IMG/VR virus record: IMGVR_UViG_3300013005_000001 | Location: 62,001 to 126,000 of that record | Reading direction: 5' to 3' (one strand) | DNA: 64,000 nucleotides | Shown here: piece by piece, positions 25,576 to 62,172 of the stretch | Layout: every line of letters begins with the position of its first letter | Numbering within the stretch: position 1 is the stretch's first letter | The notes under the pieces: generated by a model | What the model saw: only the letters and a program-made list of their open reading frames with translations | Database searches by the model: none | Told to the model about the DNA's origin: nothing | Program-made: the position numbers and the translations under genes

Positions 25576-25833
25576 CTAATCATAATACTGATTGTCTTCT
25601 TCTTTAGGCATAAAGGAGCGCCTACTTAAATATCGTTGCTTTAACCATGGATTGTATTTTTTGTAAAGTCCAATCATAGTATTATTGTATAAAACAAAAG
25701 CATCGATGTAACACATTAAATCATCATGATGTGATTCGTTAATCTTTTTTTGATACATTTGAAAGACTTTAGTTCTTGCAGAAAGAGGAGGATGCCTAAA
25801 GGGTTGCTTAACCCATTGGTCATTATAAGCCAT
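25576..25833 (-). CDS. hypothetical protein
   Basis: ORF track. Confidence 0.5.
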   Translation of the reverse strand: MAYNDQWVKQPFRHPPLSARTKVFQMYQKKINESHHDDLMCYIDAFVLYNNTMIGLYKKYNPWLKQRYLSRRSFMPKEEDNQYYD

Positions 25834-25859
25834 GTAAAAAAATCCTTTTTAGAATAAGT

Positions 25860-25939
25860 TGGTACGGGCGACGGGACTTGAACCCGCGTGCCACCAACTA
25901 CCCTTTCTACACTTTATAAGAGTGAGGGGATACGCCCGT
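25860..25939 (-). tRNA. non-canonical tRNA-like RNA with TAT (Ile) anticodon-like loop and no standard D arm
   Basis: ACGGGCG/CGCCCGT acceptor, A73, CCA, GCGGG-TTCAAGT-CCCGT T arm, CACT-CTTATAA-AGTG hairpin. Confidence 0.65.
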
Positions 25940-25983
25940 GTGTAAAAACAGAGATGTATCCAAGCATATTCGAAAATCTAATC

Positions 25984-26253
25984 TCATTGTGCGTTCTCTT
26001 TACGGGGTTGTTCTTTGACCATTTGATATAAAGCTTTTATTCCAAGCGGAGTTATAGTATAACCTTTGTTGGATTTGATTGCAAATCGTTGACGGACAAG
26101 AATGTCTAGTGAGCGGGTAGCAGTACTAATTCTTTTATTATACTTTGTAGGAGATAAAGCCATAAGATCATTAACAGTAGACCATTTCTGGCCTCTGGTC
26201 TTAAGATAGTATAACGCTACATGAGTAGGGGAATTACGCTTAATGTTAATCAT
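25984..26253 (-). CDS. winged-HTH-like DNA-binding protein
   Basis: RSLDILVRQRFA...GYTITPLG wing pattern; GGAGG RBS. Confidence 0.55.
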   Translation of the reverse strand: MINIKRNSPTHVALYYLKTRGQKWSTVNDLMALSPTKYNKRISTATRSLDILVRQRFAIKSNKGYTITPLGIKALYQMVKEQPRKENAQ

Positions 26254-27533: not shown

Positions 27534-27690
27534 AGGTTTTCCTCTTCGGTATAATACCAATTTTTTGTAGGAGCATAAACAATTTTAGAAGCAATATAAA
27601 AAATAAATATTGCAAGCAATTGAATAAATAAAGATTGAGTTAATCCTATATAGATTAACCAAATGTAGGTAAACATAAGATTTAGCATAG

Positions 27691-27764
27691 TGGGCCCTCT
27701 GGGGCTCGAACCCAGGACACACGGATTATGAGTCCGATGCTCTAACCGACTGAGCTAAGGGCCC
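27691..27764 (-). tRNA. tRNA-Ile2/Met(CAT)
   Basis: GGGCCCT acceptor, CT-CAT-AA loop, canonical arms. Confidence 0.9.
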
Positions 27765-46958: not shown

Positions 46959-47415
46959 TAATATTCTCCTTTGTACGAATAAAAAATGTATTTTTATATA
47001 TGTTTATGCGACTTGGGACCATTTTTAGATCATGTCCAGGATCATTGCCAATTGCAACACTAAATTTAGTATATTGATAGAACATTCGTCAATGCATATA
47101 CTAGGCATGATAATTTTACGCAGGTTTTCTATCAATCCCGACACGTCACTTTACTTATAATTAAGAAGGACACGTGCAGCCCTTAGTACGCCTAAATGGA
47201 TTCGAACCATTATAATATTAAGTCTTTACTTTAACCAAGGTTCTTTTCGAGAACATTAATACCGATTACCTATCGACGTCTAGCCTTTTATATTGTCAAT
47301 GCTAAGGACAAGCTTTAAAAAAATACTAAGATTGTTTACAAACATCTTATGTAATTATAATAAATGTGCGTTTATTATACTGTATGCGCACCCCACAGTT
47401 GGTGGTTACCGAAGT

Positions 47416-61752: not shown

Positions 61753-62172
61753 CTAACCCTTCGTGAAGCCCTCGCTTGCGTTGAAGACATTGATTTCCAT
61801 CTTCGTGATGTGTTCTTCGTTATACATAACGACGATGTCATCACGCTGGATTTCTTTCTTCAGCCAAGCTTGCAGACATTCAGTCACAACATGATGACTG
61901 ATTTCTTTTGTTGGGCTCAGAAGACAAAACGGGTTGGTCTTTTCCCATTCGGAGTCATACTTGCTGACTACGGTAAACATCCAATTGAAGCCCTTTTCAA
62001 GGCCAATCAGCTCGACATCAACCCAGTTGGCAATGGGAACTACCTTTCCGTTGATGTATCGGCCCGGAGACACAATTTCATCAAGAGTCAGGTCGTAGCT
62101 TGCCCACAGAAGCAGTGCTCCAATAGGAAGATTCATGAGAGCTTCGACAAGCTCCCAATCCTTCTCGTCCAT
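61753..62172 (-). CDS. hypothetical protein
   Basis: AAGGA RBS in cassette. Confidence 0.6.
   Translation of the reverse strand: MDEKDWELVEALMNLPIGALLLWASYDLTLDEIVSPGRYINGKVVPIANWVDVELIGLEKGFNWMFTVVSKYDSEWEKTNPFCLLSPTKEISHHVVTECLQAWLKKEIQRDDIVVMYNEEHITKMEINVFNASEGFTKG

Follow-up and report, generated by a model that had tools for sequence, protein, structure and literature searches.

A probable tRNA-Ile(UAU) with a rewired core in a phage genome, and its family of Ile- and Arg-type relatives

The stretch of phage DNA analysed here, referred to as the window, comprises 64,000 nt (positions 62,001 to 126,000 of IMG/VR record IMGVR_UViG_3300013005_000001). Its minus strand carries, at 25863-25939, a 77-nt element that is probably a functional elongator tRNA-Ile(UAU), reading AUA and built around a rewired core, from a phage family with Ile and Arg members. 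The gene runs from the first acceptor base (nt 1) to A73 (nt 77), with boundaries given by a covariance model and by conservation: family model R1 scores it at 93.9 bits (E 1.5e-24) over its full length, and conservation among relatives halts exactly at the acceptor ends. It is the single copy in the 210-kb genome. A sequence-only reading of this DNA had proposed a rearranged, non-canonical Ile tRNA, and this proposal gains support from covariation, from A73, from U at the analog of position 20, from location in tRNA arrays and from complementarity with standard tRNA genes.

The acceptor stem of the element is ACGGGCG/CGCCCGU, formed by nt 1-7 (25933-25939) and nt 70-76 (25864-25870), which covary; it is followed by the discriminator A73 (nt 77, 25863), which is A in 231/231 Ile-type members among the matches listed, and by an encoded 3' CCA (nt 78-80, 25860-25862) read directly from the sequence. 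The T arm (nt 53-69, 25871-25887), delineated by covariation, is standard, with a 5-bp stem and a UUCAAGU loop (GCGGG-UUCAAGU-CCCGU) that matches the TTCRANY consensus. The anticodon hairpin is CACU-CUUAUAA-AGUG. Its 5' strand (nt 15-19, 25921-25925) places U15 opposite U31 and contributes to four Watson-Crick pairs with the 3' strand (nt 27-31, 25909-25913), both strands being assigned by covariation, and its loop (CUUAUAA, 25914-25920) has 7 nt, U33, A37 and, at 25916-25918, the anticodon UAU. The acceptor stem, A73, CCA, T arm and UAU anticodon had all been recognised in the sequence-only reading, and all are present on the minus strand within 25860-25939.

What departs from a standard tRNA is the core. 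No D hairpin lies 5' of the anticodon hairpin. The acceptor stem is instead followed by a junction, U8 A9 (25931-25932; UA in 220/220 distinct members), by nt 10-13 (UCCC, 25927-25930), which covariation places in the role of the D-stem 3' strand (standard 22-25), and by C14 (25926), a putative analog of position 26 acting as a spacer between two stacked helices, which is invariant in the alignment, though fixed by most search patterns. On the 3' side, a linker of A32 plus G33 A34 A35 A36 (25904-25908) joins the anticodon stem to nt 37-40 (GGGU, 25900-25903), the partner of nt 10-13 and the replacement for the D-stem 5' strand (standard 10-13). In sequence terms, UAUCCCCU lies opposite AGGGUA across the anticodon hairpin, and AGUUGGU sits in the "variable" region. 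The relocated D loop and its connector (nt 41-52, 25888-25899), assigned by covariation and by the position-20 analog, can be aligned with the standard numbering as A41 = A14, G42 = R15, UU, G45 G46 = G18 G19, U47 = U20, GG, C50 A51 and C52 = Y48.

The fold energy of the window element as a single sequence is no better than chance (z = -0.95), so the structural evidence was taken from relatives. When the structure was tested on 131 diverse relatives, paired cells made up 97.1%, compared with 64.3% in shuffles, and covariation scored 0.844, whereas slid registers reached no more than 0.155. Double-sided changes occur at 18 of the 20 pairs. The acceptor stem has double-sided changes at 7/7 pairs (96.7% of cells paired), 4/5 pairs of the T stem covary (96.9% paired), and the anticodon stem pairs 16:30, 17:29, 18:28 and 19:27 all covary (99.2% paired). 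Position 15:31, the analog of 27:43, is U.U in 209/220 members; some Arg-type members seem to carry U-A or U.G there, as judged from single sequences. The anticodon stem is thus short, with four Watson-Crick pairs plus U.U, and this was counted against tRNA function.

Evidence for the long-range helix came from scans that forced variation on one side and left the partner free. The partner strand followed in all four Watson-Crick types. Pair 11:39 is CG in 99 relatives, AU in 24, UA in 5, GC in 2 and UG in 1; pair 12:38 is CG in 91, UA in 25, and AU, GC and UG in 5 each; pair 13:37 is an invariant C-G, and the D-like helix as a whole is 100% paired. RNAalifold, run without a supplied structure, predicts the same fold, including the helix of nt 10-13 with nt 37-40. 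The covariation shows that a long-range helix, nt 11-13 with nt 37-39, encloses the anticodon arm and replaces the D stem, with the D-loop-like ARYYGGN immediately on its 3' side. The minimum-free-energy register (U8-A41, A9-U40, U10.G39, C11-G38, C12-G37) was rejected, being without compensatory changes; 11:39, 12:38 and 13:37 were chosen as the sole register that such changes maintain. In that register U10 faces U40 at the end of the helix. The long-range pairing suggested earlier is therefore real as a helix, with its register shifted to C11-G39, C12-G38 and C13-G37. The earlier observations that a D hairpin is missing before the anticodon arm and that a D-loop-like motif lies in the variable region agree with both sequence and covariation, and a standard cloverleaf fold is not borne out, since covariation puts the D-like stem around the anticodon arm.

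Covariation also extends to tertiary pairs. Position 42:52, the analog of the 15:48 pair, is A:U in 56 of the 131 relatives, G:C in 50, G:U in 4 and something else in 21. The analog of 19:56 is G:C in 318 and A:U in 6 of the matches listed, with zero discordant cases. U8 likely pairs with A41, the A14 analog, which is invariant, though fixed by most search patterns; A9 is a possible analog of A21. The invariance of U8 A9 is not independent evidence, because the dinucleotide was fixed in every search pattern or extraction filter. The linker, by contrast, was left free in the pattern, and nt 31-36 are NNGAAA, always 6 nt long, in 103/103 distinct matches listed. GAAA is proposed to fill the D-stem groove as nucleotides 44, 45 and 9 do in standard tRNA.

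These data support the following path. After U8-A9, the chain descends one D-like strand (nt 10-13) straight into the anticodon arm and comes back, via the invariant GAAA linker, into the second D-like strand (nt 37-40). The D loop (A14 R15 YY G18 G19 N20) comes last and leads into the T stem via CA-Y48. The net effect is that segments 10-21 and 22-45 of a standard tRNA trade places. The three swapped chain junctions lie near each other in the standard tRNA core, and the same L shape, elbow and synthetase contacts could therefore form. An L shape for the rewired tRNA is what the covariation would predict.

Evidence on amino-acid identity comes from the anticodons and two further positions. Among the matches listed, anticodons are confined to the Ile and Arg classes: UAU in 177, GAU in 54, CAU in 3 (perhaps also of Ile type) and five Arg anticodons in a total of 84. 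Each of the eight distinct anticodons sits in a proper 7-nt loop with U33 and a purine at 37, and the loop is CUACGAA in 31/31 ACG members. Among the same matches, U occupies the position-20 analog in 228/231 Ile members, and 84/84 Arg members have A there; discriminator 73 is A in all Ile members (231/231), whereas Arg members mostly have G or A. The identity set for bacterial tRNA-Ile is A73, U20, A35, U36, A37 and A38, and that for bacterial tRNA-Arg is A/G73, A20, C35 and U/G36 (PMC9976931, Table 1). Position 20 and discriminator 73 of the family thus match the IleRS and ArgRS identity rules of PMC9976931, and the window element has the Ile set, with A73, UAU, A37, A38 and U at the position-20 analog. 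The minor Ile elements U12-A23, C29-G41 and C4-G69 are variable in the family. An encoded CCA is found in 32/231 Ile-type and 49/84 Arg-type members listed, with C74 near-universal. If unmodified, the UAU anticodon could also read AUG.

Seven scans of viral contigs yielded more than 500 copies and at least 326 distinct sequences of the rewired tRNA. The full-length copies come from unrelated phages of soil, gut, lake and sea. Carriers include viral contigs and cultured phages of Streptomyces (Jay2Jay, EGole), Microbacterium (A3Wally) and Bacteroides, one of them crAss-like; Kehishuvirus tikkala, which grows on Bacteroides cellulosilyticus, is also among the cultured carriers, as is Streptomyces phage Braelyn. 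The copies are of GAU-Ile type near 75 kb in Jay2Jay or EGole and at 95.58 kb in Kehishuvirus tikkala, and of ACG-Arg type near 95.8 kb in Braelyn and near 93.6 kb in A3Wally. The family was gathered by sequence patterns, so the sample is skewed to the clade with the GAAA linker; two divergent relatives carry a different linker, and L504:14212-14288 and L024:5487-5565 are examples of linker variants. A scan of genome contigs gave 47 matches, of which 11 were real, with acceptor stem and T arm, and the others were chance matches to the 18-base pattern. Occasional copies are broken, such as a 5'-truncated copy in L497. No GenBank phage matched the surrounding 3 kb in a megablast search, and the best named tblastn match of the helicase, at 36% identity, is to a Tunturiibacter phage.

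Nearly all copies among the matches listed lack annotation, and at least one copy carries a wrong label in its GenBank record. ARAGORN is blind to the element even with relaxed settings: lowered thresholds, intron mode and metazoan-mitochondrial mode called nothing at the element and gave spurious calls beside it. The Rfam tRNA model (RF00005) misses it in a default scan of the whole window. A sensitive scan of 401 nt did give 31.7 bits, above the gathering score of 29, but only in an alignment with the D arm deleted and an 18-nt insertion, with 4 nt placed where a D hairpin expects 15. Across 15 carrier loci, 5/18 located members scored 29-33 bits with this model. The family model, in contrast, gives members at least 63 bits and ordinary tRNAs about 20. 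The checks called for by the sequence-only reading, with ARAGORN, a homolog search and covariation analysis, thus gave a tRNA finder that misses the element and a family that is conserved and covaries. The literature searched, mostly open-access, yielded no description of the rewired architecture, which is likewise absent from a 2026 paper on 4-bp anticodon stems.

The genomic context is that of tRNA genes. Standard tRNAs are present in 354/391 carrier loci, at a median distance of 99 nt, and in 464/466 cases the closest of them shares the strand of the rewired gene. In Kehishuvirus tikkala, tRNA-Trp and tRNA-Met are separated by 90 nt that lack annotation, and the rewired gene occupies this gap. 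Rewired UAU genes co-occur with standard GAU genes 23 times and with standard UAU once, and for rewired GAU genes the counts are 10 with standard UAU and 2 with standard GAU; Fisher's test for this Ile complementarity gives p 2.7e-6, in a calculation that treats related loci as independent and uses partial contig stretches. An Arg-type anticodon is duplicated by a standard Arg gene in 2/31 loci. Rewired genes fill anticodon slots left empty by standard genes. UAU tRNAs had been described as rare, which does not hold for phages: the carrier loci alone hold 29 such genes of standard form, tRNA-Ile(UAU), called by ARAGORN. Codon usage in the source phage points the same way, with ATA as its commonest Ile codon (44% of Ile codons, 29.4 per 1000), and its other tRNAs, UCU, UCC, UUU and UAA, likewise suit preferred A-ending codons.

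Comparison of neighbouring and large ORFs with PHROGs and Pfam found no tRNA-related or otherwise informative partner; the matches were to an AAA ATPase, a JAB-domain protein, a subtilase, a helicase and a PcfJ-like protein. Neighbouring genes vary between carriers, with no conserved partner adjoining the element. The sole RNA-library coverage is from metatranscriptome contig X16 (window 25825-26033), which spans the gene with zero mismatches at a depth of 2.3, no deeper than the flanks. This is weak evidence of expression, as the coverage could come from a read-through transcript or contaminating DNA.

As an elongator tRNA, the transcript would presumably be processed by RNase P and the CCA-enzyme, charged by host IleRS, and delivered by EF-Tu to decode AUA on the ribosome. 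The simplest origin would be one ancient rearrangement that left function intact, for instance a partial duplication with later deletions, after which the rewired form spread through phage tRNA arrays. The Arg members could be derived from Ile members by a change of UAU to UCU, a single base, plus U20 to A20.

Three other explanations deserve consideration. The silence of ARAGORN, the marginal Rfam score, the ordinary fold energy and the occasional broken copies might suggest an element without function, either a tRNA pseudogene in decay or a sequence that resembles a tRNA by chance. There are, however, hundreds of full-length copies with compensatory changes in every helix and two tertiary pairs, and the family model separates members, at 63 bits or more, from ordinary tRNAs; judged by the covariation data, this explanation is already refuted, and we give it almost no weight. 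The element might instead be a tRNA mimic or decoy, as the sequence-only reading suggested with anticodon nucleases in mind: an RNA that takes no part in translation and diverts a host nuclease or toxin aimed at Ile or Arg tRNAs, sparing the real ones. Phage tRNAs are known to counter tRNA-targeting defences, which favours this idea, as do the well-conserved anticodon stem-loop and the odd core, which might alter recognition by other enzymes. Yet a decoy needs only the part that the nuclease recognises, while U20 with A73 tracks Ile anticodons and A20 with G or A73 tracks Arg, and the elbow and Levitt pairs are maintained through compensatory change. Nor do the rewired genes tend to repeat an anticodon that a standard tRNA already supplies, whereas a decoy for those tRNAs would predict the reverse. 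Identity nucleotides, elbow contacts and non-redundancy are all needless for a decoy, and the analysis produced no positive evidence for one. We regard this as improbable as the main role; decoy action might still bring an extra benefit beside a tRNA role.

It is very improbable, in our estimate, that the element serves as a dedicated carrier for a non-ribosomal reaction, receiving its amino acid from IleRS or ArgRS and passing it to a phage enzyme and not to the ribosome. Precedents exist: special tRNA-Gly species serve cell-wall synthesis, and Gly-tRNA serves phage Mu Mom. A phage enzyme that uses a charged tRNA has been described, with glycine, not Ile or Arg, as its substrate (PMC13219725). 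The conserved synthetase identity elements are consistent with such a carrier, as is the alteration of a core that ribosomes and some factors contact. No conserved partner gene adjoins the element, however; its neighbours here are without known function and differ among carriers. The T arm, which binds EF-Tu, is standard, and eight anticodons are kept in proper loops and complement the standard sets, which is sensible only if the anticodon is read.

While the reading as a functional elongator tRNA-Ile(UAU) is well supported, a selective reason for its topology is a more tentative matter. One possibility, which we consider rather unlikely, is that the topology was selected because functional elongator tRNAs of this form escape, or withstand, an attack on tRNAs to which the standard Ile and Arg species fall victim. 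The attacker might come from the host, as a defence nuclease or toxin, or from the phage itself, as an enzyme that depletes host tRNAs. If so, the phage would still decode AUA, AUY and Arg codons while standard tRNAs vanish.

If the elongator reading is correct, the family would be the first class of functional elongator tRNAs with a non-cloverleaf topology outside organelles, and a worked example of intramolecular segment swapping for tRNA evolution. Phage tRNA repertoires would be under-counted, especially for decoders of the rare codons AUA, AGA and AGG, since ARAGORN does not see these genes and Rfam scores them marginally. The presence of the family in cultured phages of Streptomyces, Microbacterium and Bacteroides makes the question directly testable, and a scaffold with altered connectivity may interest engineers of orthogonal tRNAs.

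Comparison with standard tRNA-Ile and tRNA-Arg (RF00005) shows how much is retained. The rewired form shares the 7-bp acceptor stem, discriminator, 5-bp T stem, TTCRANY loop and 7-nt anticodon loop; A14, R15, G18 and G19, with covariation at 15:48 and 19:56 and identity at position 20; and overall length and location in tRNA arrays. Unlike a standard tRNA, it has no D hairpin, its D-stem strands are split by the anticodon arm, its D loop lies 3' of that arm at the site of the variable loop, and it carries an invariant GAAA bulge. Its junction is three-way, not four-way, and its anticodon stem has four Watson-Crick pairs plus U.U.

Structural parallels exist in organelles, where mammalian mitochondrial tRNA-Ser(AGY) and nematode mitochondrial tRNAs lack a D arm (PMC4394434, PMC12013499). 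These share the three-way junction and an elongated helix to the anticodon loop; they have simply lost the D arm, in whose place a short loop precedes the anticodon stem on its 5' side, and they usually lack the elbow consensus of G18G19 and the T loop. The rewired tRNA, in contrast, relocates its D stem and loop, its elbow pair covaries, and its carriers are phages of bacteria; 5' of its D-like helix there are only U8 and A9, and no replacement loop of the mitochondrial type. Tertiary structure is reached by a non-cloverleaf path in the 3' tRNA-like structure of TYMV as well, one of the viral tRNA-like structures to which PMC9976931 refers; it stands at the end of an RNA-virus genome, with a pseudoknotted acceptor and no decoding. 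That structure likewise has a tRNA-like L shape and is recognised by a synthetase, as is predicted for the rewired tRNA. The rewired tRNA differs in being a free-standing 77-nt gene in the tRNA arrays of DNA phages, one whose acceptor stem is standard and whose anticodon carries meaning, and a mimic free of decoding is a poor description of a family in which two anticodon classes have matching identity nucleotides and complement standard genes.

Segments are also reordered in the permuted and split tRNA genes of Cyanidioschyzon merolae and Nanoarchaeum, where processing restores a standard cloverleaf. The rewired gene, however, is contiguous over 77 nt with normal acceptor ends, no splicing motif was seen in it, and its internal rearrangement should persist in the mature RNA. 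To our knowledge, cloverleaf arm order is held to be universal for cytosolic-type tRNAs, the exceptions being organellar losses and gene permutations that processing undoes. The allo-tRNAs, with 8/4 or 9/3 acceptor/T lengths (Mukai et al. 2017, PMC5389517), are likewise non-canonical; they occur in bacteria, in phages and in metagenomes, and standard tRNA finders overlook them. They alter helix lengths and keep arm order, whereas the rewired family keeps 7/5 and alters the order. If the elongator reading of the rewired family is right, the L shape, and not the cloverleaf, would be what synthetases, EF-Tu and the ribosome require.

The element is encoded on the minus strand (window 25860-25939). 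Counted downwards from 25939 as nt 1-80, it consists of the 5' strand of an acceptor stem (nt 1-7), U8 A9 (nt 8-9), a UCCC block (nt 10-13), C14 (nt 14), an anticodon hairpin with the loop CUUAUAA (nt 15-31), A32 and a GAAA linker (nt 32 and nt 33-36), a GGGU block (nt 37-40), the segment AGUUGGUGGCAC (nt 41-52), a T arm of standard form (nt 53-69), the 3' strand of the acceptor stem (nt 70-76), and the discriminator A77 followed by CCA at the 3' end. The sequence-only reading had described a tRNA-like RNA with no D hairpin before the anticodon arm and with a D-loop-like sequence in the variable region, and direct inspection of the locus showed this description to be accurate. ARAGORN detects six standard tRNAs in the window, each encoded on the element's strand, but does not call the element itself, in the window or at the locus, even with relaxed thresholds or in mitochondrial mode. 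The element is also absent from a default Rfam scan of the window. In a sensitive Rfam scan of 401 nt, the tRNA model scored 31.7 bits on the element (gathering score 29), in an alignment with the D arm deleted and 18 nt inserted in the variable region. The single-sequence fold energy is not better than that of shuffles (z = −0.95). The meaning of the layout cannot be shown from one sequence.

Relatives were collected by scanning IMG/VR contigs with patterns that captured the element's unusual segments, with a filter requiring the acceptor, anticodon and T stems all to be paired. These scans yielded at least 520 elements and at least 318 distinct sequences, or at least 326 with a relaxed T-loop filter. 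Conservation runs exactly from one acceptor end to the other and no further, the flanks being unrelated. A covariance model trained on 131 diverse members (R1) gave 93.9 bits for the element, at least 63 bits for members in 100 further loci, and at most 19.5 bits for the phage's standard tRNAs. A weak R1 match in an AT-rich stretch elsewhere in the window (47187-47279, minus strand; 14.8 bits, E 0.09) is probably noise. ARAGORN calls overlap 8 of 520 family elements; the five overlapping calls inspected among the first 404 elements are artefactual (94-96 nt). Default Rfam reports 5 of 18 family members located in 15 carrier loci, at 29.3-33.1 bits; scores of 40-79 bits are usual for the standard tRNAs of these loci.

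Among cultured phages, the carriers include about 45 that infect Streptomyces (Samistivirus; two loci), the Microbacterium phages A3Wally and Zooman, and the crAss-like Kehishuvirus tikkala, a phage of Bacteroides cellulosilyticus; a Rhodococcus phage is a candidate from a BLAST match only. Among uncultured GenBank entries, bajarodcaudo virus 1 is a carrier and phage cr130_1 a candidate, again from a BLAST match only. The element is unannotated in the GenBank records inspected, with the exception of Streptomyces phage EGole (L261, MK494112.1; 1499-1575), where it is labelled tRNA-Leu(UUA); this is a misannotation, since the loop CUGAUAA reads GAU (Ile). A nucleotidyltransferase gene lies immediately upstream of the EGole element. 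The carrier array of Streptomyces phage Braelyn includes a tmRNA (L585, 2423-2689), and an RNA ligase gene adjoins the tRNA block of A3Wally (L586, 2719-3060); these two phages are heavily equipped for translation and RNA repair. One Arg(ACG) member (L497:1888-1959) is truncated at its 5' end and lacks the acceptor 5' strand, making it an apparent pseudogene and showing that family members also decay. Among cellular genomes (one for each of 185,579 species), the commonest subtype has 11 real copies, mostly on contigs of metagenome-assembled genomes. One cellular copy, a rewired tRNA-Arg(CCG) at L231 6534-6610, comes from the isolate Achromobacter anxifer LMG 26857 (NZ_CAHLAR010000005.1, L231), where it is part of a dense tRNA island. 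This 8-kb island (L231 1-8000), probably a prophage or another kind of mobile element, has 15 ARAGORN tRNAs, a permuted tmRNA (RF04321; L231 4262-4597) and a GOLLD RNA (RF02032, 165 bits; L231 7191-7667). Two odd ARAGORN calls there, an 86-nt “Arg-ccg” (L231:4845-4930) and a “tRNA-???” (L231:7903-7976), have apparent 8-nt anticodon loops and fall outside the rewired family.

The family is large, and its helices are kept by compensatory change. In an alignment of the 131 diverse members, standard pairs occupy 97.1% of cells, compared with 64.3% in shuffles, and the covariation score is 0.844, whereas sliding the partners by 1-3 columns leaves 0.155 at most. Double-sided changes are found in 18 of 20 pairs, and RNAalifold gives the same structure without being supplied it. 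The key helix pairs nt 11-13 with nt 37-39 and encloses the anticodon arm. For an unbiased test of this helix, scans were run with position 11 or 12 forced off C and the opposite side left free. Among the distinct sequences listed, the 3' block (nt 36-40) changed to match the 5' block (nt 10-14): UCCCC occurs with AGGGU (at least 105 sequences), UCUCC with AGAGU (at least 57), UACCC with AGGUU (at least 33), UUCCC with AGGAU (at least 6), UCGCC with AGCGU (at least 5), UCACC with AGUGU (at least 5) and UGCCC with AGGCU (at least 2). Apart from six U.G wobbles and a single sequence whose only change is at nt 10, the matches listed show no exception. Since the partner blocks change together, the register is fixed at 11:39, 12:38 and 13:37, with U10 facing U40; the different register of the single-sequence minimum free energy fold is ruled out by the same changes.

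Anticodons, counted over at least 318 distinct members, specify Ile (UAU in at least 177, GAU in at least 54), Met or Ile2 (CAU, at least 3) and Arg (UCU in at least 35, ACG in at least 31, CCU in at least 10, UCG in at least 6, CCG in at least 2). A scan barring A at position 35 returned only Arg anticodons among the matches listed. For bacterial ArgRS, A20 is the main determinant, together with C35, U/G36 and A/G73, while the Ile identity set includes A73, A35, U36, A37, A38 and U20 (Giege and Eriani, PMC9976931, Table 1 and text). Among the matches listed, all 84 Arg members have A directly after the GG doublet, where 228 of 231 Ile members have U; the discriminator is invariably A in the 231 Ile members, and Arg members mostly carry G or A there. 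The identity nucleotides that lie outside the anticodon thus track it, and the position-20 nucleotide is situated in the relocated loop. This tracking is strong indirect evidence that synthetases would meet the relocated loop as a D loop and that the RNAs would be charged. All 31 ACG members listed have the loop CUACGAA, the one carried by the A34 deaminase's standard substrate. Ile UAU and Arg UCU are one mutation apart and all invariant core nucleotides are common to both classes, making it plausible that the classes had a common origin followed by a switch of anticodon and position 20.

Of 391 carrier stretches, 354 also have standard tRNAs, whose median distance from the element is 99 nt; the nearest is on the element's strand in 464 of 466 cases. 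In K. tikkala, the element occupies a 90-nt gap between an annotated tRNA-Trp and tRNA-Met. Rearranged UAU genes co-occur with standard GAU in 23 cases and with standard UAU in one; rearranged GAU genes co-occur with standard UAU in 10 and with standard GAU in two (Fisher p 2.7e-6 for complementarity, treating related loci as independent and including partial contigs). A standard Arg gene duplicates the Arg-type anticodon in 2 of 31 stretches. Because loci are related and contigs partial, these statistics are supportive rather than decisive for non-redundancy with standard tRNAs.

The source virus record is complete (210,302 bp with direct terminal repeats; 37.5% GC), and the phage DNA occurs in metagenomes from lakes and fresh water. 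No cultured phage proved closely related, and helicase identity reached 36% at best. The element is single-copy in the genome; its neighbours are small ORFs with no recognized function, and the larger genes of the window are ordinary replication and accessory genes. ATA is the top Ile codon of the phage (44% of Ile codons, 29.4 per 1000), which also favours AGA, GGA, AAA and UUA, in agreement with its tRNAs UCU, UCC, UUU and UAA. The phage “tRNA-Met(CAT)” (window 27690-27764, minus strand; acceptor stem GGGCCCU with C4-G69 and C5-G68) resembles a lysidine-type tRNA-Ile2, so the phage may have both a standard and a rewired decoder of AUA. Six metatranscriptome runs contain parts of the 1.4-kb stretch around the element, and one contig of 209 nt from run X16 covers the element, matching window 25825-26033 with no mismatches; the depth of this contig, 2.3, is similar to patchy coverage nearby, and the contig says nothing on RNA ends, so it lends weak support to expression.

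The phage family to which the element belongs covers Ile and Arg, and the element itself is very probably a functional tRNA-Ile(UAU) with a rewired core. That the RNA is instead a decoy, an alternative that the sequence-only reading had raised with anticodon nucleases as the target, or that it carries its amino acid to a non-ribosomal use, or that the gene is a pseudogene, is in each case judged less probable than decoding. The simplest view of the topology is a frozen accident spread through tRNA arrays; the more interesting possibility, a speculative one, is that it was selected for escape from a tRNA-directed activity.

The family sample was drawn with patterns centred on the GAAA-linker clade. 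Two divergent Arg relatives (L504:14212-14288, UCU, and L024:5487-5565, UCG) share the rewired layout and have a relocated AAUYGGAG loop, but their linker is not GAAA and their 5' block differs; R1 gives them only 47 and 39 bits, respectively. The true family is therefore wider than the sample, and these two tRNAs point to a more divergent clade beyond the patterns used. No earlier description of the architecture was found in searches of mostly open-access literature, including by conserved sequence strings; a prior description is possible.

The polarity of the key helix relative to the anticodon stem is that of a standard D stem. As in standard tRNA, nt 37-40 run outwards from the anticodon side like positions 10-13 and lead into A-R-Y-Y-G-G-N (D-loop consensus A14 R15 Y16 Y17 G18 G19 N20), and nt 10-13 run inwards like positions 22-25 to C14 (the position-26 analog) and the anticodon stem. 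U8, A9 and A41 are invariant and compatible with a U8:A14 pair, but invariant positions provide no covariation evidence, and U8 A9 were fixed by every search pattern or extraction filter and A41 by most. At the Levitt pair analog (42:52), 56 of the 131 aligned sequences have A:U and 50 have G:C; of the 220 distinct sequences then collected, 109 have A:U and 82 have G:C. The elbow analog, between the second G of the GG doublet and the third T-loop base, is G:C in at least 318 and A:U in at least 6 distinct sequences, with no G:U or A:C among the scored matches listed; this count leaves out two sequences without the GG-plus-A/U motif. All six A:U cases are Arg-type and so may stem from only a few independent changes. 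When the pattern placed no constraint on the linker, nt 31-36 read NNGAAA in all 103 distinct sequences listed, and by analogy the linker purines might, tentatively, fill the D-stem groove as nucleotides 44, 45 and 9 do in standard tRNA. It is the connectivity that differs from standard tRNA: U8, with A9, leads into the “22-25” strand, the anticodon stem exits through N-GAAA into the “10-13” strand, and the D loop ends in CA-Y, which leads into the T stem, as though segments 10-21 and 22-45 had been swapped. In solved tRNA structures, the nucleotides at the three junctions (8/14/21, 9/45/10 and 15/48) touch one another, so the rewiring would be sterically plausible. The family departs from the one feature of tRNA usually taken as universal, the order of the cloverleaf arms.
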